Assembly: GCA_964035545.1 (NCBI GenBank) | Contig: OZ037765.1 | Span: 11,480,698-11,544,697 of the forward strand | Origin: Bugula neritina | Lineage: Eukaryota > Animalia > Bryozoa | Direction: 5' to 3' | Length of the DNA: 64,000 nt | Shown here: positions 10,125 to 63,949 of the stretch, one piece after another | Numbering within the stretch: the stretch's first letter is position 1 | Layout of the letters: every line of letters begins with the position of its first letter | Notes under the pieces: generated by a model | Databases searched by the model: none | Seen by the model: only the letters and a program-made list of their open reading frames with translations | What the model was told of the DNA's origin: nothing | Made by a program: the position numbers and the translations under genes

Positions 10125-13100
10125 ATGACAGCACCAACTACTAAGAGGGCATGGAAGCTCCGTAAGTCAATGCACTTAACCATATGATATACTATTACTT
10201 TTTAAGTTATATGTATGGTTGCTTAAATTTAACAAATATTACAATATATGTGAGAAAATGGAATAAATGAGTTTGATGATTAGGTAGTTATCACTGTTCT
10301 ATCATAGACATTTATTTACCTGGCTATTAATCTTTGCATGTATTCAACTCGGTGTGGCTTTATTACTTCTTGTTGCTCAGTCTAAGTTGCAAAATTCTAG
10401 AGTTAAACTACTGCGAGATGTTCTTTGCTGACTAGTTTGGTGTATGTCTGATTTTAATTTTGTTAAACAGAGGAGTTTGTGGCCCATGGGGCCAGTGTCA
10501 ACTGTCTAGCCCTAGGGCATAAAACCGGCAGGGTGATGGTCACAGGGGGAGATGACAGAAAAGTGAACTTGTGGACAGTTGGGAAACCTAACTGCATCAT
10601 GGTAAGATAACTGTTATTTCTATCACAAACAAAGAAGTAGTGATCTTTTAGCTGTAGTTTGAATGCCTGTAACATAAATATTTAAAAATGTGAGCTTTCT
10701 TTTTAAGGCCTAAATACATAAGATGTTGAGTATATTCTTTGTTTGACAGGTTGTATGTCATTGGGTTCAAATTGATGCATCTTTTTCTATTTAAACAAAG
10801 TTTTTTCAAATCCTCACTTGGCTATAAGATTTTAATATCTAAAGGTTGAACTCTCCAAGTAGGTTTAAAGTTTGACAAGGTGTTGCAATGTCCATATAGT
10901 GTCCATATAGTATCCATACAAGTTATAATGCACAATGTTTCCTTGGTAACACCTGTGGCCTCATGTAGACCCTCTTATTAATGGAGTTGACAGTAATTAT
11001 GTGTGACAGGAGCTGCTCTGTGCACTTGACTCACAGCTCACTTGCAGTAACTGACAGATTCCACTTAGTCAAACGTAGTATTTGTCATTGAAGCAGCTAG
11101 TTTAGAAATTGTATAGCAAATTCTCTCAGGATCAATGTTTTGTTCAATAATCATTTACACAGTGAATAAGTATAAAGATAAAAATGCTCGACTCATTTAA
11201 TTATCTTTAGTTGACTGTTTATTAACACTAAGCTTGTCTTTACAACGTGTAGTCGTGTGCATTATATAGGTGCTCTAGACACTCCCTTCTACTATCCAAT
11301 AACTTGAGTTAATGTATATAAAATGCTGCATTCTTGATTGTTTATTGATTAAGTACTATAGATGATAGCTCTTATATTCAGTTATAGTTTGTCCAGTTTT
11401 CTTTAGGCTTTTGTTACAGGAAAAGGTTTATTTAAATTAATCTTATAACAATAGATTTTTACTCATCAAATTTTTCAGTAGCTGCTATCATGAATAATAA
11501 GTGTTCATTTTTATTATTCTATTTGCTCCTTGATATACCTAAAAGATGCACACAAAAATTTAGTATTTATTAGCACTTTCTAAAGAAGTAAATGCTATTT
11601 AATGTTACAGAGTTTATCTGGTCACACAAGCCCCGTAGAAGCTGTGAGGTTTGGTAATGCAGAGGAGATGGTGGTTGCTGGGTCTATGTCTGGGGCCCTC
11701 AAGTTGTGGGACCTGGAACAAGCTAAAAGTAAGAACAGTTTTGTCTAAATTCAACCATATATTATTTTGTATTTCTTAGCGGAGAAGGAGAAGTTTTTCC
11801 AAAGTAGTACTTACCAGCCTTACATTTGGTAGTTAACCCTAAAAACTAATAATTGATTATATTAATTCAATAATTAGCATGTTCTAGTCAAGTACCTAGC
11901 TGTCTAGCCAGCTTAGTGCTACTTCTGATTACTTGGTATATTTTATTAAGCCAAGTTTAACCACTTTATCTACTAATTGAGATATGGCAGCACCCCTGAT
12001 GAGGCAGCACAGATATTAGCATGCTATTTATACAATTACCCTGTGTCCTGTTTTTTCATCTTTCAATCATACAACAATCTGGTTTTTTTTGTATGAATTA
12101 TAAGCCAACTTCACCTTGATTATGGGGAGTATGTATTGCAACCTGCATAAACTTTCTATTGAATGTAATTCTTTAGAAATGAATCAAATTACAATCAATG
12201 AAAGCATTTAGACTACAGCAACTTGTAAACTTGAAGAAAGCATCTTAACAATACAATATTTTATTACAATGTTGTAGATGATACATGTTGTGTTTATTAA
12301 AACTGATTCTCTAGTTTAATCTCTCTCAGCTGAATAGATGGGATTTAGTTCGTGGCATCATTATTGATCACTTTTGCATATTTTAAGACTATGAGTGTGG
12401 TGTTGCTTTCCAGTTGGTAGTGTCTTAACTGTTATGAATGAATAATTTGATAGCATCAGACAAGGTGGCTACTAATTGGTGTACCTACTACTACTAATAT
12501 TGAGATAGAATGAGATGTGGAATATACCTACAGCACATGCTCTGTCTGTATATGCTAGGAACTATAAACTGTATTGTTCAAAATAATAAACATTTTTATT
12601 GATCAATTTATAAACACATGATTACATAATTGATAAAATTGATTAGCATGTAAAAAGTTCTGCTCCAAACTTAGGCTGGAATATTTTAATGTAGCTTTTC
12701 TATAAACAACTAGCAATACTTGTGTTTAATTCTAACAGGAACTAAGGCATTATAAGAATTCAACATAAAGTTATATCATATATAGGTGACAGTATTATAT
12801 CTGTTTTAGTTATCAGAACCCTAACTGGTCACAAGGCGAACATCAGATGTCTTGATTTTCATCCATATGGAGACTTTGTGGCCAGTGGATCCCTAGATAC
12901 TAATGTCAAGGTAAACTAACTGTACGCATGTGTAGTATCTTGTGAAGAGGCTAGTATATTATGTATAAGTGTATAAGCTTTCCATCTATTAGATATCATT
13001 GCTTAATTTACAGCCCATGTTATCAGTTGTTATGTGATTATTCCTCCTGGTGGTAATTTCTCACTTCTATCAGCACCTTTATATAGAACATGACATACCA

Positions 13101-46700: not shown

Positions 46701-49700
46701 ACGAATCTAAAGAATCTTCACTTTCACTCGGTGAGTTTGTTTGGTTGTTTTCAGACACAGTTTGCTTTAGTGTTAGAATGTAGTACAAGCACCCACTGCC
46801 TTTTTCTGTCCTACTCAGTAATCTTCATAATAGTGTTTTAAAAAATCCTTAAACTAGTTATAAAGTCAAGAAATGAGTTCAGCTACTAAAATCACAGTTC
46901 TTAGTAAGTCCAGCTATAGTTACTGGAAAACTCGACGGTTACATATCTCTCATCACTAAAGCTTGAGCTTCCATACTGCTTTAGGCTTTCCTGTTAACAA
47001 GATGGATGACTCACTGGAGATAGTATTCAGTAGTAAAACGGAAGACGTGCCCGTTGAGCATCCTTTTCACAAGTATGCCGTGGCACCAGTAGATCAGCAA
47101 CATCTTTCTGATAGCGAAAGCAGCAGAGAGCTGGAAAGACTTGACGATTCTGGATATCATAGAAATGATATCGGTTTGGTAAGGGCACATTGATCATATT
47201 GAACTGCTTTTATACTCACACAGTGTAGTGCATTTTTGATGAAATGTGTGATAGATGCTGTTTAGTTATCATTATGCACGCATGTTGTATCATGTTTAGC
47301 TTTTTGGTTTGGTAAGGGGACATATTGAAATGCCTTTATACTCACAGTGTTGTGCCATGTTTAGCTTGTTTGATAACCTGATTAATTTCATTATATGTTA
47401 TAGATGGTTTCCCAGGGTAGCTTTGGTGAAATAACAGAGGATAAGACAAGCTTCAGTGAAAAGGAGGGCCCTGTTGTTTCATCCCAGACTTCTAGTGTAA
47501 AGGAAAAGGAGAATCATCAAGCTAAGCTATTTCTTTACATTCAAATGCAGGTATGTATACCAACAGAATTTCTCATGCTTTAAAATCTAATTTGTTGTTA
47601 CTGATTTGGTGTCACCAGACCGTGTGTTTTCTAGCTGTGCAAAAGGGAGACACTCCGTGACTACCTCAATGCTAACACCTTGCACCGAGATAAGAACGAC
47701 ATCTTACTTATATTCAGACAGATATGTGATGCTGTTGAATATATTCACTCCCAGGGACTCATACACAGAGATTTAAAGGTATCTCAATATGGAATTTTCT
47801 GTGCTAACTTTGTTTTGTTTTATGTTTATGTATTTCGGCTTTAAATTTGTTTAGTTAATATTTAATAACTTCATGTATATAGTCATGACATCTTTGGGTG
47901 TTGAATAAGAATTTACCAAGATTGAAGCAACCATTACATAAATAATATTTTCAGTTTGAGTGTTTGTTACTTAAGAGATTTGTGCGTTTGTATTTCAGCC
48001 AACCAACATATTCTTTGCAACTGATAACACCATAAAGGTGGGAGATTTTGGACTTGTTACGGCTCTGTCTGTGCTTCCAGACCAGAGCTTTGATGGGGTC
48101 ATAAGTAGTCCCAACGCAGTGGATCAACTTAACCTCACCAACAACGTTGGTACTAAAGTCTACATGAGTCCAGAGCAGGTGAGATCTACTTGCATGCATT
48201 TATCTCTTAGAAATTTTTCTACAGAAATTGCTTTTCTTTACTGAATACTTGTTGCATCGTGTTTTTACAGCATACAGTTTTATCTATTCAGGTGGCTGGG
48301 AGACAATATAACAGCAAAGTTGACATTTACGCCCTAGGTCTGTTGTTCTTTGAGTTGAAGTACCCATTCTCAACAATGATGGAGAGAGTTATTACGCTGC
48401 TGAACGTTAAGAAGAATGAATATCCAGAGAGATTTATAAGGGAATTGCCATCTGAGGTTAGCATACAGTAGTTACTGCATACATATCGTCGGTTACAGGC
48501 TTGGGAATTAAAAAATTACCACTAAATTTAGTTTAACTTGAGCTATCCCAAGGTATTGTTTGTTTAAAAACAATTAATGTTTAGAGACATGCAGTGAATT
48601 GCTTGTATTTTTATCAGGTTCACAATGGTTAATCAAAGACGTAGTAATTTGAAACCTAACTAAAAAAAACTAGATCAGGTTTAAGTTAAATCAAGCATCA
48701 GCATCAGCTCAATAAATTCTAATCAGATTGCATGTTAGCTAAATATATTTTTTTTAAATAGTTGAATGGTTAGGTTATTGATAGTTTAAGTCAAAATAAG
48801 CGTGTTGGTTTAGCTATGTTAATCTGTGCTAAGTGAATGGTAATATAATATTCATGCAGTTGCTATAATCACTTGATTTAGCATTATCACACATTTACAT
48901 AGCTATGTTATTACCTGGTGACATGTGTACAATAAGTAAATCAAAATTAAATATTTTAGCAGATGATTAATTTTAAAAACTTGTAGAAATTTCAAGTATT
49001 GGTAGCAAAGTTCAATATGAAATATGTTAAAGTCATCACAGCTAATCATAAAAATATGGTTTAAACGGTGTTAATAAAATCATCGCAATAATTAACTTTG
49101 CCAGAACTTTTCTTTTTAATAATCCTGAAAATAGCTGGTTGTTTAACTAAAAATAGTTAAATAGTAAGACTGTCAATTCACTAAGATTCAATCAGAGGTG
49201 AATCAAATGTTTAACAGTTTGTTAATAGTTGACTGAAAATTTTAAAAAAGTGTTTCCAGGTTTGAACTTTACTTCAAGTGAGGGAAATTTTCCAATCAAT
49301 TAGCTGAGGAAATTGAATTAGGGATTTTAGTAAGTCAATGATTGACTAATTAGGACAAGGAATAATAAGTTCTTGCTGCAAGTAACCTGGACTAGCTCTA
49401 TATTTTGGAAAATTTGTTGAAGCTTATTTTACAATAGACTTTTACTATACTATAGCAATCACCACTGACTAGACCTTCAAATAGCGAGTCTAGTCTACAA
49501 ATGCTGTCCTGCAAGAGTAGTGAGACTTCTCGCTTTTCTTTAATTATGTAATAAAAGATATTTGTTTGCTTTGTCAAATGCACCTTTAGAAAGATTATAC
49601 TTTTAGTGGATGTACATTATGTACATGCTTTAACTCGTATTTGAACCTGTATTTTTGAGTGAATAATTGCACCAAGCTTTTGTAAATTTAATAACAAAGA

Positions 49701-49912
49701 GAATATCAAGTACTGCTCATTTTGTTAATATTTCTTGGAATATTATTTTATCACAGTACAAGTTCATCAGCTGGATGCTTGCCAGAAATCCTAAAAATCG
49801 TCCTTCTATTACCGAAGTGCTAAACAGTGAAGTGATGCTTGGCTCGGATTCCCTGTTGCATGCTGACAGAGTCAGGACAAGGACTGTTTCCCGGTCTAGC
49901 AATCATGAATAA
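40793..49912 (+). CDS. EIF2AK3: PERK / eIF2-alpha kinase 3; exons 40793-40935, 41082-41205, 41421-41618, 41755-41882, 42152-42258, 42424-42512, 42647-42791, 43117-43251, 43712-43822, 43945-44087, 44326-44448, 44770-44915, 45502-45624, 45889-46032, 46570-46730, 46985-47178, 47404-47550, 47635-47778, 47999-48178, 48292-48456, 49757-49912
   Basis: Signal-peptide-like N-terminus; IRE1/PERK luminal motifs ([22 protein letters not shown]); TM segment [22 protein letters not shown]; kinase motifs [44 protein letters not shown], kinase insert, [34 protein letters not shown]. Confidence 0.96.
46048..46344. repeat. 18-bp minisatellite, about 16 copies, in a PERK intron
   Basis: Unit tatactgtagacatacat, with alternating cacacat/catactt variants in the middle. 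Confidence 0.95.
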
Positions 49913-50749
49913 TGTTATGTAAACTTTATATGTTATTAGTAGTTGTTAGTCAGAGTATATTTTAGTATTTTTTTTTGTAAATAATATTTTCAGTTATATC
50001 ATATTTTTGTGCAAAATACATGTTCTTGATTTTTAACAATTGTAATAATGCTGTTTTTATTAGAAAAATGTATATAGTCAGACTTCATGCTGCCATAAAG
50101 TATATATTCTGTAATATACATCTCAAATTAGCTGTCTAACATTAATTTTTCTGTTCCAGCAAAACTTGTTAAACAAAAGTTAATTTGCTAGTGAATTTTT
50201 TTAATTGTTAGCTTTAGTAAATGAGAGTAATTCTAAAGATAACAGTTTTCAAAGGGTGAATCTTCAAAGTAAATATTGCTTTATCATTAATAAAATAATA
50301 TGTGTAATCGGTCTTTTACAGAACATTTAGCTGAAACTTATATCTTTTGAGTCATGACTTGTCATATAAAATAAATATAGGATAATTTCAAATGAAAGTG
50401 TTGTATATGAGGTAATTTTCTAGCAATAAGTTCTCGAATGTGATATTGATGGGTAAAAACACTTTATATCTACAAGTGCATGGTAGGCTATTACTTATTT
50501 ACCATGATATTTATTTTCTGCTTACTTAATCTTTTTTATTTCAACATAATCCTGCACATAGTCAATTCCAGAATTACTAGTAACCGTTTGATTTTAATAA
50601 CTTGCTTGCCAGGTTTTTGGTATTCAAAAGCCCAGCAAACTTACTTGGTATCTTTAAATATTATTAACTTGCAAATAAAAAGTAGGAATTTTTTGTCATT
50701 TTAAGGAGTTGTCTTTCTTTGCTAAAAACTACAAGCGAAAATTTTTTCT

Positions 50750-52778: not shown

Positions 52779-55700
52779 ATGGGTCCTCATTCTTATAACG
52801 ATGAGAATGATTTGCAAGTATTACACTGTGCCTCAGAGATTGTGAGAGGTACGTCAACATAGTCACTCTGAACTATTAGAATTACTTTCTAGTTTTTCTC
52901 TTTTTCTCCTCCATTTACCAAAAATGAAAGTCACCTATAAAAACCTATTCAATTGTCTTACGAATTTACTATAAATATTTTTATTTTTTCCATTTGGCAA
53001 TCTATGAATTCTGTATTCATGCTGAATTATATAAGTTTTTTTTTGTATAATCAAGCTTGGCAAACTTCCCTTTTTTAAAAAAATTGTGACATTTTATTAG
53101 TGGCAAATGTGTGTATCAAATGCTCTAAAGTTGCAGTTGCACAATTAGCTTACTTTACTCTCTGCTATAATACAATAGAGATAATGAGCTGACATTGTAA
53201 AATAACGATAGGAACGTCATACAGCATGTAGCAGCGTATAAGTAAACAATAAGGCATTCAGCACTCTACAAACAAAGTAACTTTTCATCTATTCACAATC
53301 TTACTTAACTTAAGATAATTTCCTTGCATTGTGACTGTATTAAGTATTTGTCATTAATATAGCTTGGGTGTATCCTAGCAGCATAGAGAGTCAGCGCTGT
53401 GCTGTGCTGCTGCCTAACAGTTGTATCAACTTGAAAGTAGCATAGTTGTTGCTGCCAATTTGTTGAATACAGTAGCCACTTTATGCTCCTTGTGTTTTGC
53501 TCCTCACATTATGTATGTATTTACTAGATCGCTTCTACTTTGCTGTGTTGAGAACTAAACCAAAATCCACAATCAACACACATTACTTTTCCATTGATGA
53601 TGAGTTAGTCTATGAAAAGTAAGTCTCCTCCATGGTTTCTCTCCAAGACCTGTTATTACCAGCTCTTTCTATTCCCATTTGTAAAAAATTCAACAGCAGC
53701 ACTGAATGTTTTATGTTATGAGAAGAAAATCCTATTAATTATGTTATTTTTAGTTAACTTGCACTGCTTATTCATAAAGTTTCAGTAAATACAATAATGA
53801 CTTAAAAACATCTAGTTGAGCTAAAAATTTCAAATAAAATTGAATTTAAAAATTTGTTTAATGAAAAAAGAACAATTTTAGTGACTCATTTCAAAATGCC
53901 ACGCTGACTTGAAGAATTAAGTTGAAAATTCAGTGCTCCATTTTAACAATGACTATTACAAATTGGCATCTTTTTTTCTAAATTGAATTAACTGTATTGA
54001 CATTCACTTTCCATTATCAGATAAGTTTATGTCAACTAACCAGCTTCTGTAAACTGTACATATTTACTTCTCTAATACTCTAACACTTGTTATCTTTCAG
54101 CTTCTATGCAGATTTCGGGCCACTGAATCTATCACATCTCTACAGATATTGCTGTAAGGTGAACAAGAAACTTAAGGTGAGTTCCTAAGCTTACCTGGGG
54201 TGGGTGGGACATGAGCTAGTTGAAAATTTCTGGTCTTGTGGATCTAAAGCTAAGCACTGACCTTAGATTAAGCAATTGATTTTACTGCCCAGTAGGTAGA
54301 TAGTTTTATTCTAAGCAAGAAAACTGAGTATCTATTATAGTTTGGTACTACATTGCCAAGTGTTGTAAATTTACTAGTCCAAGTACCAATAAAGTGAAGG
54401 ATATGTATCTTTTATCTGCTACATTGCGTAATCGTATAAATACTTTCGATCCATAACAAGCTCGAATGACCGAGTGCCATGAAAAACTACCTCTTGAACT
54501 ATAAGTTTTAGCCATTGTGTCCTTTTACACTCCACAAAATGGACAGCAAACGATATATTATTGCTAACAAAACCAGGCAGCTTCTGCTCTATTACCTGCG
54601 AACTGTATAGTACTCAGCTAATTATTCAGAGTGTTCAACTGGTCTTTATAATAGTGAGGTCATTCTCTCAAAGCTCTTTGGTGTTTTCACACACTTACGG
54701 GTTTAATATTAATAATTACCTTACAATAAATTATCAGTGAAGTGAGCAATGACCAGGAGAAACCAATTACCTTTCATTGTTTACCACCAGTTCAAGAGAT
54801 GAAAGGTAACATACAAAGCAGTGCTATTTGCTGTCATCGTCCTTAGGCTTTACTGTCAGCTAAAAAGATGAGACAAACTACATTCTGTCACAATGCCTGT
54901 TGGTAATATGTGACCACTTGCAGTACTTCTAAACTGCTTTGTGAAATGCTAACTTTTTTGAAGTTATATAATTCACTAGATAAACAAATTGTCTCCAAAT
55001 TGTAATTCTACTGCACTGTAAAGCTACCCACTAAAAAGCACTTTTTATGCATACTGCTACATGATAACACATAAGTAGCTGCTCCTCTGTCAATTCTGGA
55101 TATCAGGAAGAGTAATCTGCTAGTGAATTAAGGCTGGTGTGTTTTACACCCCAACTTGAAGCTTATAATTAGAGATTTGGGCTAAAATGTATCATTTACT
55201 AACTTGGCCAAATACCATATAATGGTAGCAAACACCACAGTTCATTCAACATGGAACACTCTCTTCTAAGGAAATTCCATGCTGAACTGTGCATGCCATC
55301 GTTGTTTTATGTACAGTCACAATATTGTATCCAACTTACTTTATTCTCCGTTCATATTTGAATGTATACTTCTGCAAGTTTTATCTTCCGTTACAGTTCT
55401 GGGTTTGTTTTGTAGTCATACTCTCTTGGAAAGAAGAAAATAGTTCATTACACTTCATTTGATGCCCGTAAACGTGCCAATGCAGCCTTCCTGGTTGGGG
55501 CTTATTCCGTATGTATAATATATACACTTATATAATTTTGCAGAAATTTCTTACAGCCCATATAGTAATAGCATAGTATATCGTTTATTTTATATTATCA
55601 ACTGAAGTGAGAGTAACTTAAAGATATTTAGGCAGCTCATAACAATTTACAGCCGAATTCAAGTAGAAGACAGATTTTTAAAGTAGAACTTTGGCTAATT

Positions 55701-58700
55701 CTATTAATTATTTTTGGTACAATAAAGTGTTTTGATGCTGTCACTTGGGAGTGTTTTCTTTTGTTGCTTCTTACTTTTTTCTGTTTTATACTAATCAGCG
55801 TTTAGTTTTCTAAAGCTGCTACTATTTGCAGTGAAGTAACCTGTCAAGATATTTTCAAAATATGGTCAACAAAAATATTAGATTTTTTATTATGGATTTT
55901 AAATTTGATTTTTCAATAGCTAAAGTTTACTGATTTCTACTCCTAGTTACTAGATGGTGATGTCATACATCAATTTGATTTCCACTCAAGTGAATTTAAA
56001 AATAGAACGGGTGTTATTCAATTCTTTTTAAAAGAGATAGCTACACACATTTGAAAGGGGAGAAAAAGATTCACTATTATTTTTGTATAGTAAACGATGC
56101 TAATTTGTAATTTTTAAATATTTTGCTCTGTTTTTTGCATAGTTTTTTATTTACACGGACATGTCATTTACGCTGGCATGTCATTGAAATAACTATCTGA
56201 CTTTTTTAATAATATGCCATTTTGCTGTGGATACCTGGGAAAATATGTTGACCAGGTGTTGCTTAGCACGACTACTTGTCTGGTGCTAGAGAGGCCATGG
56301 CAATGGAGTAGGCTGTACAATAAGTTTCCTACTTCAAAGCAAATTGTCAATTTTGGGACTTGGCATGAAAATCAGTCGAGCCATTTGTCATGATATCATT
56401 CATTTTAACATGGCTACATTAATGGCTCTTTCATGGCAATCTACCATGTAGTGTTGGCATAAATTCCTATCAATAGACTGTCTCTTTCAAAATTATGAAG
56501 ATTTTTATCTGTTTTCGCTTTGAGAGTAAATGGTTAGTGACATTCCTTCTAAATCAGTGCAACATTGTTTATAGCTTACAACTAGTCATAATACTCTTGA
56601 ATAATATGCATAGTTACCATACTATGTGCACTTGTGTGTAAACTGTAACACAATCCACACATTGGGAATTTGTGCTATTATTAATATGCAAACTCAAAGA
56701 AACCATCGCACCATGCAATCACCAGCTATGCATGTGTCATTTCCTTCTTTTTATGTGAATGTAGTAATAGAATGCACACTGACTTTCAGTGAATCAATAT
56801 TTTGTTTTGATGTTTTAAAAAATATTAAGTTTTATCTCTATTTTTAACAGTTACAGTACAATAAGTCACTATAATATGCAGAGTATATCTTATTCTAATT
56901 AAGTTAAAAATGGACTAGTTTCTTAAATATGGTTGAGTTGTACAACTTCTGCAATTGAATTCAAACAGCCCACAGCAGTCAAGCTTTCCTACTTCGAAGC
57001 TGAGACTCTTGTAGCTTCTGAGTGAGAACCAGGCATTGTTTATAAATTCAGGCACTCATTACATACAAATAAGCATGGGTGTATGTTGAGTACCAGTAGG
57101 CTGTTCTGTGCCTTCACTTTGTTTAAACAGCTATAAAATTACTAGTTTTAGTATGTTCAGTAAATATTGCTGTGAAAAAATGCTGTCATTTCATGCATCG
57201 CTGCATTCACATCGCTGTCAATAATGTCTGGCTAACATATTGGCAGCACTTCAATACATTCATTGCTAACATGATATTGATCCGACTAGCTGGCTATAGA
57301 ACCATAGCTAATAATGTAATAGTATTGATTTTCTATACTCTCGAACCATTGATAATCATGATACACTGAGCATGTACATATCTCCTCTCTCTTGTATACA
57401 TTACACTGAAGATATATCGTCTATCAATTATACTCTAATGTTCGTCTCAACTTCCAACTACTCTGTTTGCGTAGAGAGCTGATATTGCTGGCCATTACAT
57501 TATGTTATGCTAAATATTGCAAACCATAAATATGCAGCTCCCCTACTCTATAGCCTGTTATCTACTTTATAGCCTGTGTTATCTCATTTCTAGGTGTTAT
57601 ACTTGAAGAAAACTCCAGAGGAGGCCTACAGACCCCTGATTGTTGGTGACCGAGACCATTATTTGCCTTTCAGGTAACGTGCAAGTTGTGCTATACGTAG
57701 GTTAGAAAGGATGCAGGGTAGTGGCAGTAGTGAGTTAAAAGTTGGTCGTATTCTATTCCAATAGTATTAGTATGTGTTGCAGATAACTTTGATGGTGGCT
57801 ATGTGTTAACCAGTAGTTTAAAAAAACATTAATAGCCAATCATGGCAGCAGCAGCAATGTGTTAAGTAGTAATTGAAGCAGATAATGATGGTGGTCTATC
57901 ATGTACTTGTGGTGGTATACAGAGGTGACATCACTGATGGTTTTAATGCTCCATGGTGACAACTGTGATGATTGTTAGCTTTAAGTAGAAGTATATGTAG
58001 TAGAAGGAGAAGATTTTGAAACTGGTTTCTCTTTCTGTCCTCATTGTAATTTGCATTAATTTCTAGTGCTACTAGCTGTATATGCACGTTGCCTGTTGCT
58101 ACACCAGATACTGTGTAGCTCTACATGTTGTTATAGCGGCTGTATGTGTAGTAACACATGTTGCTGTATTTGTAGAGATGCCTCATTTGGAACAAGCTCC
58201 TACAATCTCACGGTGCTGGATTGTCTTAATGGTATTAACAAGGTATTTCCAGCATTATGTTCTTTACTTCCCACCTTTGGGCTACTTTATACCTGATAAA
58301 AAGTATTATAGCTGTAAATACCAGTTCTAAATATACCTCAGTTGGCACCGAGTCAGCATGCCAATCAAGTAGCTGTTGGCTAGGAGTTGCAACTGTTGAT
58401 AGCTTGGCTACTCAATTAAATTAATTACACATAGTTACAATAACAGCACTAGTTACTGCTTGCTAGGTATTATACAGGTTTTATTGTGATATTCTTGTAG
58501 GCATTGGTCCATGGATTCATCAATTTTGATAGTTTTGACGCAGATGAATATGAGCACTACGAGGTGAGAACACAATCCTTCTGCTCGTGTAAATATCCTC
58601 CATTTTATGGGCAGCTGCCGACTTGAATAGCCCCTGTGCTGCCTGTAACTAGTAACTGACCTTTCTCTGCAGTCCCAGCATTTTAAATTTTAAAAAAAGC

Positions 58701-61700
58701 TTCAATTGAGACAATTGATTAGATTATATATCCTAATTTAGCACTGCAGTATTCCAGAACGAAATTGCCTCACAAATATACAGGCGCAGTATTGAATATA
58801 TATGCAGCTGACCATTTATTCATGAAATCTCATATTGCTGTACTCTAGCTAAATACACATTTGATATGGTCAGCAAGTTGTTTAGTTGAGACGTACATTT
58901 TGTTGCAATTAACCACACAATTTGGTAGCTAAAATGACTTAGAGAAGTTTGGGCAAGTAATAGAATCAGCTCAGGGCATTCAGTCGTGTCATTTAAACCA
59001 GATTCATATTTTATTCATGTGAAGCAGTCCGATTAAAAATTGTCATTCATGTCACTGCGACTGCTATTACAATAGAGTATTGGGTAGAGGCTTGAAGTTA
59101 TACAATCTTAGCTAACAATGCTGCTTAATATTATTGTTTTTGTTCAAGTGAAGTGTTGATGGAATAAATCCATAAATACCATTGATTAGGCATTAGCATT
59201 TGCTTAACACGGTAACCATTAATCTGCTTCATGCAGTAAAATAATGTGTGCCATTGTAATAATAATCCTAATTGTGATTAGCAACTGACCCTATTGTACC
59301 TGGTTCGCTGTTGCACATGTACATGTATTATACGACATTTTAGAAAGTAGAAAATGGTGATTTCAACTGGACTTTACCTAAAAAGTTTTTATCTTTTTGT
59401 GGTCCACATCCAAAGAGCTGTATAGAGAATGGTAAATGTGGCACCTAGTAGTGTTGTGATTGGCTGTAACATGCTCAGTGTGGCTGGCACTAACACCTTG
59501 TAGTATTTCTTCTACACACAAAATTTAGTGAAAATTAGCTTTCGGTTGTTATCTAATCTTAGTGTAGATTGCCTTCACTCCAACTATAATTGTTTTAACA
59601 TTCCAAATGTTTGGTATCATCTGGATTATGGGTATATCTGAGTCTATTATATAAGATCACATAAGATGGTGACTAAAATAATACTAACTTGCTAGTCAGT
59701 TCAAGTAAATAGCAGTCAGTGTAAAACTCTTGATACTTGGAACTGCCTACCAAGATGCCTAGAGTCGATTGTAAAACTCAGCAAGTCAACAATTATTATG
59801 TTGGAGTTGGAAATTTCTTGCTTTTATCTTCACAGTAGGACGCTCCTTTCTCAGACTTACTAACGTGTGTGCAAACATATTTGTGTTGTGTGTGACATTC
59901 CTAATTATTTGTTGTATGTATTTTCTTTTTGGTTATTCCTAAAATCTGTAGAAATTAGAGAATGGGGACTTGAATTGGGTGCTGCCAGGAAAGTTTGTGG
60001 CGTTTAGTGGACCACACGCTCAGTCAAACAATAACAGTGGTAGACGTATTGTTTTATATTTCATGCTTCAGAATAGAGGGTGTTCATACTTGAATGGTTG
60101 TTACTAAAATAGATTTACTACTTGTGTTTTACAACAAGCAACTAGTATACACACCCGGTTATTCTTTAACCAACACTGAAGGTTTATCCACCACATATGT
60201 GTACCTACACACAATATTCTGGCTATGAAACTTCCTGATCTGTTATTAGAATTTAAAATTGCCTACTCGCTAGACTGATCATAGTTGTATTAAATGAATA
60301 GTTAGGAGTTGTTATTTCATTGCTTTAATTCTAACGAATTAATATTGGCAATAAACTGGTCAATATGGGGGATTGGTAGTTGACAATGTAGGTAGTTGTT
60401 CTAGTAAAACTTGTTTTCATTCTAAGTTGATACCCTGATAAAGTCAATCAGGAGGGATACAATACATATTATTTCTATGGACGATTGCTTTTTCAAGTGT
60501 TAAATCAGTCATCTATCAATATGTATGTTGGCAACTTTCCATCCAGTTTGAATATTTTGTCAAAAGTTTTAATTTGCAATGATTAATAGAATTAGGAAAT
60601 GAAACTGCATGAATTAGCCTACCTAGTGTACACATTTAACTGAACGCAGTAAGGGGTTTACATATATAACTGGTGGATAGATTTTCAATCATGCTTCAAT
60701 TTATGCTCTGTTTGCTATGCTGGCTTCATTAAAACTGCTAAACTGATTTTAGGCTTTGGTGAGAGTGAATTGCCAAGTTTACTCTTTGTAATTGAACTTT
60801 GAGTATCAGGTTCATGAACCTTATTGTTTTAAGTAAAGGCCAAAAACATTTCTTTGAACTTGGACAATAGCCACTCACCCAAGCTATAGTAGTATGCTTT
60901 ATCTTAGAGAACTGCACTGTAAAGTTGTAATAATTGGTTATGAAATATAAATTGATACTTGTATTAATATTAATGAATAATTCGTGTTATTTGATATTGA
61001 AAATTCCAGCATTGTTTAATTAGTATAACTAATGTAGTTCCACTTTCTTTATCTTCAAAGGTTATCCATTGCATGCCCCTGAAGCCTACTTCCCATACTT
61101 TCGGAAAAATAATGTGACAACAATAATTCGGCTAAACAAAAAATTATACGATGCCAAGAGGTTTACTGATGGAGGCTTTGATCACCATGATCTCTTCTTT
61201 ATTGACGGCTCAACTCCTAGTGAATCTATAATCAAAAGATTTTTGGAGATTTGTGAATCAACGGATGGTGCTGTTGCTGTTCACTGCAAAGGTTAGCATG
61301 TAATTCATTACTTCAACTTGTTTGCTTCATTCGTGTCTTTGTTGTGTGGATAATCCACGCTTTTCTCCTTTATGCTCTTCAGCTGGCCTTGGTAGAACAG
61401 GCACACTCATCGGAATATATATCATGAAGCACTACAGATTCACAGCTGCCGAGACGATAGCGTGGCTGAGAATATGTCGGCCTGGCTCCGTGATTGGACC
61501 TCAGCAGAACTTTCTAGAAGAGTAAGAGCTTTACTTGAATACCCCCCCCCCCCCCTTCATTATTTACTCAACTCTGCATTCTAATAAAAATATTCAAAAT
61601 AAAACATTTTTAAAAATTAGATTTATTCACTTTAGATACAAACTAATTATAGTGTTGAAAAAGCCAGAACACATATTTTTGTTGTGGACAAGACATGCAA

Positions 61701-63949
61701 CTATAATAACAACCATTCTACTTGTGGACTTTAAATCAATGATGCATAGACTTATTCTTATCACTCAGTCTCATCACCACTCTCTTCTTCTCTCTGTATA
61801 CCTGTCACTCTCATCTAATTTCTAAATCTTCTTCTCTCCTTTCCTTCAACCCCACACAGCAATGAAAGTTGGTGTTGGAATCTCATTGTAAAGACTTACG
61901 CCAAAAAACATGAACCAAAAGTAGAGCAAATTCAAAGCTATTACCATAAAGATTGCATGCCTCTACCATATAATGATGTTTCTCCCAGCTCCTCTTATGA
62001 CGATCTCGATATTTTAAAATTTGCCCCAAATAAAAAGACTCGTGAACGTACACGATCTACATGTGCTCGACAAGTATGTACTCGGTATATTTTATCAAGG
62101 TGCTGAAACATTTACCCATTTGGCATATAATCTATAAATAACATCGTGAAATCTCTACAAAAAGTTGTGAAAAATTGACTGATTACCAAATATGCCTACT
62201 TTCGAAAATGTATTCTGAACAATGATAATTGACTATTTAAATTTAAAAGTTAGAAAGATATTTTGGAAAACAAAAATTAGATTTATTGTAAATGCCAAAT
62301 GTGTACTGTTTGCAGCACAAAATATGGTGCTCTTGTTTAGGGCAGCGTTAGTCACTCTGAAGCTTATATTTGAGCTTAGAGGTGGCAAGAAGCAGGTCCT
62401 GTATAGATTGGAGGGGTTGTTAGCATATGCCTATGTCATGTCATGTGTTTCAGAAAGCAGGCTTGGGCGTGGATGCAAGGAGATAGTCACAGGGCTAGAC
62501 AGAAGCATGGCCGGCAAGGGTATAAGTCAGTTAGTCCCACTCGGTATTCATACGACCATTTAGTCAGCTCTATGGACAGGATGCGCATCAAAGACTATGC
62601 CGACGATGATTATACACTTAGTAACAATAATAATGATGTTGACACCCGCTCCAGATACCTTGACAACTCGGTAAATTCTCAACTACCTTCATTTTGATAC
62701 TGCATGGCGAGTCACCCAACCAAACCAAACAAGCATTTGTCTTCCCCACACTTCTGCTGTTGCAAATGGCTGGACAACTTTTGTTTAATTGTCGGCTGCT
62801 GTTTATATGTTTTGTAAGTTGGCGAAGTGAAAGTAGAATGTCATTGGTTGTATTTGTAGAAAGTAACCTCAAGTCCTGCGAGAACTGTGGACGTGACGCA
62901 AGGAGATCGGCTGAATGCTCTAAAGGCAGCACATCAAAGGCAGCGACACTCCAGGGCAGCCACGACAGGTTCAAGGTAATTTATGCATAGAAATCATGTC
63001 TTGTATATCAACTATTTTGTTCCATCTTATGGGCGATATATGCATAAAAATTCTTCAGTCCGCAAGCTGTTAATATTAAATATAAATATATTTATTAATA
63101 TTGCAGCATTCTATTTATAAGTTTCATATTCTAGGAGTTTTGACCTAGCCCAAGCTAGATATCTGCGCTACAGTGACTGGTTGTAAGTTGGGGCATAACA
63201 ACGCACCCCCTTACTATTATATATAAATGCATACATGTACTAACAGTAGTCTCAGCCTGCTAAGCCGCATGGAGCATGCAACTCCTGGCTGGAGGCTGTT
63301 TTATTCAAAGCTCTTTGGCTTTTGCTCTTTCCAATGTCTTGTAAATGCACACTAACGATTTCCACACGTCATATACTTACCTTCTTTGATCAATTACTAT
63401 TTCGTGAGTTTTTGTTGTTTTGATTGGTTGATATGTACTATAATTATATCGTTTCGTAATGTTGTCAATGTCCTTCACTAAGTCCTTGAAAAGTTGTACC
63501 TTTAGCTTTGATATGCTTACCTTTTTCTTTCTGTTGAACAGTTAATGCTGTGTCTTCATAACATTATGTTTCATTGCTCTAAACACACATTGCACAGTTT
63601 TGCCATTGTTGCTATTGTGCTGATGTAAAGTGAAATATTTATGTCGCTACGTTTACTTCCAGAATTAATTGCTAAGATGTCAAAAAGTCTCTTTTGGGCT
63701 AATCAAAAGATCCATCTTTTTCAGATTTATTTTAGTAAGTTTCAATATCATATCTTACGTTGTATGATTTCGCAGCACTGAGGTGCCAAGAGATCACCAC
63801 CGAACCAGCACACAGCCGTACAGAAGCAGCGGTTCTCTGGCCAAGTCTGGCAGCGCGTCATCACCACATAAACACACGAGTACTGCTCATGTCACTGACA
63901 GCAAACGACTCGGTCATTCTGCTACGAGCAGCTCTTCAACTCTCAAACC
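52779..63949 (+). CDS. CDC14A: CDC14 dual-specificity phosphatase (CDC14A-like), 3'-partial; exons 52779-52848, 53528-53618, 54101-54176, 55416-55508, 57594-57673, 58176-58242, 58501-58563, [59344-59431 OR 59952-60039], 61061-61291, 61383-61521, [61860-62073 OR 62454-62670], 62860-62975, 63776-63949
   Basis: [76 protein letters not shown], catalytic [33 protein letters not shown]. Confidence 0.96.
59344..59431 (+). CDS. CDC14A: CDC14 mutually exclusive exon 8a ([29 protein letters not shown])
   Basis: 88 nt, tag|...|gtaaat, phase 0-1. Confidence 0.85.
59952..60039 (+). CDS. CDC14A: CDC14 mutually exclusive exon 8b ([29 protein letters not shown])
   Basis: 88 nt, tag|...|gtagac, phase 0-1, paralog of 8a. 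Confidence 0.85.
61860..62073 (+). CDS. CDC14A: CDC14 alternative exon 11a ([16 protein letters not shown]...TCARQ)
   Basis: Long polypyrimidine tract plus cag acceptor; open for 71 codons in the CDC14 frame; donor caa|gtatgt; same phases (2-0) as 62454-62670. Confidence 0.65.

Follow-up and report, generated by a model that had tools for sequence, protein, structure and literature searches.

Why does the gene for the phosphatase CDC14 in the bryozoan Bugula neritina carry two versions of one short exon, and what does the choice between them change in the enzyme? The locus lies on chromosome 1 of assembly tzBugNeri2.1 (216.00 Mb in 320 scaffolds plus the mitochondrion, with chromosomes of 35.64 and 33.58 Mb; PMC11480708), within a stretch of 64,000 nucleotides that was analysed as a whole and is referred to here as the window. 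The data indicate that exons 8a and 8b are almost certainly a functional and ancient exon pair, and that the splice choice most likely generates two catalytic cores, one with and one without a resolving cysteine.

The identity of the gene follows from exon 9, which matches solved CDC14A (E 5e-41) and CDC14B (9e-36), from exon 10, which matches DSPc, and from the hallmarks of the family, namely tandem DSP domains, the EYEHYE linker and the HCKAGLGR active site; the upstream exons match the A-domain exons of relatives. Searches were run one exon at a time and the exons were joined in local scripts to test the frame, with exon 1 and the ends of exons 2-4 placed from sequence only; Pfam gave no match for the 30-residue exons 8a and 8b. 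The first-pass annotation had described two 88-nt exons encoding a segment at the junction of the A and B domains, and both stand as described in position, AG/GT ends, phase (0 to 1) and exact peptides, with the segment at the start of the catalytic (B) domain (Table 1). The copies lie in tandem with equal length and phase, and share 53 of 88 nucleotides and 16 of 29 residues. A profile search of the interval from exon 7 to exon 9 finds no third copy of exon 8: the two exons score 92 and 80, and the next best match scores -10. An assembly artefact or segmental duplicate is rejected because the region (59300-60100) is single-copy, apart from a paralog and a contaminant contig that match in the exons, and because both exons are also present in a second individual. 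Further upstream, positions 48000-49915 of the + strand appear to hold the end of another gene, which would encode the C-lobe of a kinase, including DFG and an activation segment of the eIF2-alpha-kinase-like (PERK-like) type.

Table 1 Coordinates of the CDC14 features in the window
Feature	Position	Strand	Remarks
Coding exons 1-6, A domain	52779-58242	+	about 52779-52849, 53530-53618, 54102-54177, 55417-55509, 57594-57673, 58176-58242
Coding exon 7, 63 nt, upstream constitutive, acidic linker EYEHYE at its end	58501-58563	+	
Exon 8a, 88 nt, Cys form (K1, F7, C19 = human CDC14B Cys228 position)	59344-59431	+	RNA joints 58563>59344, 59431>61061
TGT codon, Cys at exon 8a position 19, catalytic Cys 86 residues later	59398-59400	+	
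Intron 8a-8b, 520 nt; 95-nt AG-free zone and UG runs ahead of 8b	59432-59951	+	
Exon 8b, 88 nt, Ser form (L7, S19), weaker donor GTAGAC	59952-60039	+	RNA joint 60039>61061, run X1
AGT codon, Ser at exon 8b position 19	60006-60008	+	
Exon 9, 231 nt, downstream constitutive; general-acid loop, catalytic HCK at its end	61061-61291	+	
Exon 10, 139 nt, remaining P-loop (AGLGRT) and DSPc domain	61383-61521	+	

Inclusion of both exons or of neither had been expected to shift the frame, and joining the exons bears this out. Specifically, with 8a or 8b as the only copy the frame stays open from exon 7 to the end of exon 10, 8a plus 8b runs into a stop at 60005 inside 8b, and skipping of both leads to a stop at 61115 in exon 9, both stops lying far upstream of later junctions. 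As both wrong products stop early and no other conserved mechanism was found, the sequence is consistent with NMD as the enforcer of single inclusion. Competing RNA structures of the docking site/selector type were rejected as the control of the pair, since the strongest helices of the window hardly differ from those of shuffled sequence (-24.2 vs -22.4) and are not shared with other species, a strong stem being seen in locus L012 only. A hairpin after the 8a donor scores z +2.1. Control by STAR/Quaking proteins or by a distant branch point was likewise rejected: the second individual carries a mutated form of the TACTAAC that lies 93 nt before 8b, and ACTAAY does not recur across species. Conservation of a CACTAAC at 58 nt past the 8a donor is confined to the species. 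The stem in L012, a contig probably from another bryozoan by its peptides, joins 844-862 with 978-996 over 19 bp at -33.7 kcal/mol (best of shuffles -22.4) and spans the intron between 8a and 8b; its element can also pair 3' of 8b (1287-1298), and it has no equivalent in B. neritina.

RNA contigs from four runs of four studies (X1, X2, X7 and X8), placed on positions 57500-63000, lose rare forms and do not quantify the others. The joint of 8a to exon 9 occurs in X1, X2 and X8, and that of exon 7 to 8a in X2, with a further loose end in X1; the joint of 8b to exon 9 occurs in X1 only, as one joint at depth 58. Neither the 8a-8b joint (59431>59952) nor the skipping joint (58563>61061) is present in the contigs of the four runs, which drop rare forms. 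The mutually exclusive use proposed in the first-pass annotation fits these contigs, with 8a-exon 9 joints in three runs, an 8b-exon 9 joint in one and no joint of the double or skipped type. Among the four junctions it had named for checking, three are present in the contigs of these runs and the fourth, from exon 7 to 8b (58563>59952), is absent from them. X7 contains no spliced form of 8a or 8b, perhaps through a gap left by filtering. In X2 and X8, 8b is covered about as deeply as introns are; in X1 its coverage lies well over that of the introns on either side, which suggests that 8b use depends on the sample, a comparison of depths that contigs cannot turn into quantities. In the RefSeq models of molluscs each exon copy is carried singly.

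The introns flanking the pair (58637-61089) are themselves covered by RNA contigs from three or four of the runs, and the intron before exon 6 (57684-58051) by none; one reading of this coverage is that introns around the alternative exons are slow or retained. Downstream of exon 10 lies a second candidate alternative pair, 61860-62073 (11a, 214 nt) and 62454-62670 (11b, 217 nt). Exon 11a is open, has the same phases as 11b, a similar W-x-W motif at its start and a GTATGT donor; no RNA joint to it is found in the four runs. In L012, an exon start similar to that of 11a lies 460 nt downstream of exon 10. A 10-residue motif in exon 12 (about 62890-62940) resembles the 'vertebrate' SLiCE pseudosubstrate motif of PMC11407943, and its presence in both this exon and a paralog on chromosome 2 makes the SLiCE-like motif older than vertebrates.

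Purifying selection on both copies had been proposed from the pattern of substitutions between them, and a comparison of substitution rates had been suggested as a check; the results agree with it. Between 8a and 8b, pN is 0.28 against a pS of 0.90, at which synonymous sites are near saturation. In the second individual (L010, L011) both exons encode identical peptides: all five differences between the individuals, two in 8a and three in 8b, are synonymous, and the flanking introns differ by 6-7%. At the intron rate about 4.6 amino-acid-changing differences would be expected per exon and none is seen (P about 0.01 for each). The conservation of the pair in four phyla points the same way.

How old is the pair? 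Genomic contigs of other animals were reached via their exon-9 matches, and the order a then b, with both copies 88 nt long, recurs at six loci, namely the window, L012, the bivalve-like L015, L016, Lingula anatina (brachiopod, L017) and Capitella teleta (annelid, L018), with canonical AG/GT on both copies in the window and in all five other genomic pairs. The protein record of Capitella teleta contains the a copy alone. In RefSeq, equal-length isoforms that differ only within residues 174-202 are found for Mercenaria (XP_045159847/XP_045159848), Ruditapes (XP_060605214/XP_060605215), Haliotis rufescens (XP_046353487/XP_046353488), Patella (XP_050402649/XP_050402650) and Mytilus edulis, and both exon types also occur in Magallana, Saccostrea and Argopecten, giving RefSeq pairs in at least eight molluscs. 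A single exon of the Ser type is present in genomic DNA of Lineus (nemertean), Saccoglossus (hemichordate), Adineta (rotifer) and L014; amphioxus, crinoid, mite and sponge records have one exon type each, and no such CDC14 exon pair occurs among the vertebrate proteins fetched.

A tree on the 29 columns places the 12 a-copies on one side of a branch with support 94/92. A recent, lineage-specific duplication is rejected by the shared pair and by the clustering of a- and b-copies; a tree that forces both window copies together is only borderline rejected, with p-AU 0.06 on 29 columns. The dating in related genomes that the first-pass annotation had called for thus yields an ancient duplication, found in a bryozoan, a brachiopod, molluscs and an annelid. 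The simplest reading of these sequences would be one duplication at or before the split of these four groups, with 8a lost in nemerteans; an older origin, with more losses, is a possible alternative. The split of the four groups dates to the Cambrian or earlier.

Several further CDC14 copies were seen along the way. B. neritina has a second paralog on chromosome 2 (C2:22572700-22577500; L002, L006, L007), 70% identical in exon 9 and with most introns kept, in which the intron between exons 7 and 8 is lost and only an 8a-type (Cys) exon, more similar to the a than to the b form (76% vs 60%) and fused to exon 7, is present. The Lingula contig carries exons 8a-10 twice in tandem (L017:6517-8484 and 10502-12433) with identical peptides, probably an assembly duplication. 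Two equal-length CDC14 isoforms of Branchiostoma (P0426 and P0575) differ in 11 residues at 135-151, the equivalent of exon 6, which is probably a different and independent mutually exclusive pair in the A domain. Finally, three 'CDC14 copies' on the small scaffolds C190, C217 and C80 (L003-L005, L009) are nearly intronless, have 29% GC and carry in-frame TAA/TAG mostly where relatives have Glu; these scaffolds are probably contigs of a ciliate epibiont with a peritrich-type code that were left in the B. neritina assembly.

What distinguishes the copies is concentrated at three positions of the exon, with a and b assigned by genomic order at six loci and by resemblance for six mollusc species. 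Position 19 is Cys in all 12 a-copies and Ser in 11 of 12 b-copies (6/6 upstream and 5/6 downstream copies at the order-read loci), position 1 is K in 12/12 a-copies and R in 10/12 b-copies, and position 7 is F in 12/12 a-copies and L or I in 11/12 b-copies. The exception at position 19 is Lingula, which has Cys in both copies, still distinct at positions 1 and 7; these two copies look partly homogenised (pS 0.39). The Ser of the b-copies is encoded by AGY and TCA codons alike. Both copies share invariant E3, G5, D6, N8, W9, G20, P21 and H22, and b-copies are free to vary at positions 10-17 and 23-29.

Position 19 corresponds to Cys228 of human CDC14B, because exon 8 and residues 172-201 of the crystallised CDC14B chain can be aligned with no gap; the catalytic Cys, Cys314 of the protein, is residue 276 of that chain. 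The spacing from position 19 to the catalytic Cys is 86 (314-228), and it holds in 418 of 431 proteins. This position is Ser in the human CDC14A chain and in frog CDC14A and Cys in vertebrate CDC14B; across the CDC14 family, Cys and Ser are about equally frequent among distinct sequences. In a model of the Haliotis a-form (pLDDT 91.8), the exon covers the last part of the linker helix, two strands (180-184 and 188-192) and the next loop, a composition by which skipping or doubling of exon 8 would not be tolerable. Strand 188-192 terminates in the Cys and strand 273-278 in the catalytic Cys; in the dual-specificity phosphatase fold these strands are neighbours, so that the predicted placement fits proximity of the two cysteines. 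In human CDC14B, of ten cysteines only Cys228 and Cys314 are needed for a reversible mobility shift in H2O2, and a Cys228-Cys314 disulfide has been proposed (Lim et al., PMC4493999).

These findings suggest a model whereby a tandem duplication gave CDC14 two exclusive versions of a 29-residue segment made up of the end of the linker helix and the first two strands of the catalytic domain. Each copy is spliced to exon 9, as the RNA joints show, with the frame kept, and products with both or neither would meet the computed early stops and presumably be removed by NMD. Purifying selection holds both copies, together with their fixed differences at positions 1 (K/R), 7 (F/L) and 19 (C/S), the last of which alignment and spacing equate with Cys228. 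By analogy with CDC14B, H2O2 would lead the 8a enzyme to link its position-19 Cys reversibly to the catalytic Cys by an intramolecular disulfide, a bond that the 8b enzyme could not make. Exon choice would in turn set the response of the phosphatase to peroxide and its recovery afterwards, with 8a in general use and 8b confined to particular tissues or stages, as the three runs suggest. We infer the disulfide of the 8a enzyme from human CDC14B, the only enzyme for which it is reported.

That this redox difference is the selected function of the pair is our tentative preference, held at a little short of even confidence. The wider proposal, in which lophotrochozoans have had a tissue-regulated redox splice switch in Cdc14 for more than 500 million years and vertebrates separately split the two states between CDC14B and CDC14A, is possible and put forward with further caution. 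Against the redox reading, Lingula retains a pair that lacks the Cys/Ser contrast, positions 1 and 7 separate the copies just as well, and the Cys228-type site may be tolerant, given the nearly even split of Cys and Ser across the family.

Positions 1 and 7, kept distinct in Lingula as well, lend weight to an account in which the pair is functional and the selected trait is the tuning of substrates or partners, Cys/Ser being one packing difference among several. With the acidic end of the linker, the strand 1-2 hairpin and the GPH loop, the exon lines the groove between the A and B domains and the active-site rim. Changes in the loops, together with K/R and F/L, may alter which substrates are preferred, the rate of turnover or how the C-terminal stimulatory motif docks. 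The substrate groove, acidic groove included, is shaped by both DSP domains (PMC11407943), and the b-copies differ most at surface loop positions. However, the acidic and invariant residues are alike in both copies, K/R and F/L are mild, and the sharpest chemical change sits at the residue with a published redox role, and we regard substrate tuning as a possibility with a chance of about one in three.

An unlikely third explanation is that the two enzymes are nearly equivalent and the pair is kept by tissue-specific splicing programmes (subfunctionalisation), or by control of CDC14 dose through slow splicing and NMD. It would accommodate single-exon genes of either type (Ser in nemerteans, the hemichordate, the rotifer and L014, Cys in the second B. 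neritina paralog), the near-homogenised Lingula copies and the RNA coverage of the introns around the pair, but a/b differences that stay fixed across four phyla suggest that the difference itself is under selection. That 8b of B. neritina is decaying or barely used, its joint to exon 9 being a splicing intermediate, is very improbable: 8b does have the longest branch in the tree (0.93), diverged last four residues (NNNS), a weak donor and joints in one run only, but its three inter-individual differences are all synonymous, its splice sites are intact, its invariant residues are all kept and its depth in X1 stands out from the flanking introns.

Peroxide control of Cdk-opposing phosphatases has been proposed to time mitosis. 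Animals keep Cdc14 both with and without a Cys228-type residue, and the exon pair opens a direct test of the cysteine's value: two enzymes identical save for 29 residues exist side by side in four phyla, and existing RNA-seq of oyster, mussel, scallop and annelid would allow mapping to tissues. With this pair, the few deeply conserved exon pairs beyond vertebrates and insects come to include a cell-cycle enzyme, and single-isoform gene models (Capitella, Lingula) are seen to miss a second core.

Tandem duplicated exon substitutions, or mutually exclusive homologous exons, are a well-known class (PMC9741552, PMC8373072, PMC5740500). Like the cases described there, 8a and 8b are homologous, equal in length, tandem, probably used singly, ancient and confined to a small part of a folded domain; unlike those human-centred catalogues, the CDC14 pair is lophotrochozoan, with no vertebrate counterpart seen. 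CDC14 was not found in the text of these three papers or in the available part of their supplements, and a literature search with incomplete coverage of subscription journals and supplements found no published description of the pair. The molluscan CDC14A/AB-like isoforms of RefSeq represent the same orthologous exon pair with the same Cys/Ser contrast, as automated, merely numbered entries that do not describe the pair, its age or the cysteine. The pair itself is thus already in databases as mollusc isoforms; what is new is that the contrast at position 19 falls on the equivalent of CDC14B Cys228.

A functional parallel is PKM1/PKM2, in which the mutually exclusive homologous exons 9 and 10 toggle the regulatory sensitivity of an enzyme. 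Exons 4a and 4b of OGDH (PMC7969005) are likewise mutually exclusive and toggle enzyme regulatory sensitivity. The PKM and OGDH pairs, both from vertebrates, are in frame and depend on splicing factors or distant branch points for their exclusive use. Unlike in PKM and OGDH, no conserved distant branch point was found in CDC14, and the 88-nt length makes frame and NMD the simplest safeguard. With human CDC14B, exon 8a shares a Cys at the same position and the same 86-residue spacing, and regulation by a resolving cysteine is also known from PTEN-type phosphatases. In vertebrates, however, the Cys/Ser difference lies between the paralogs CDC14B and CDC14A, whereas in B. neritina it is made by splicing inside one gene.
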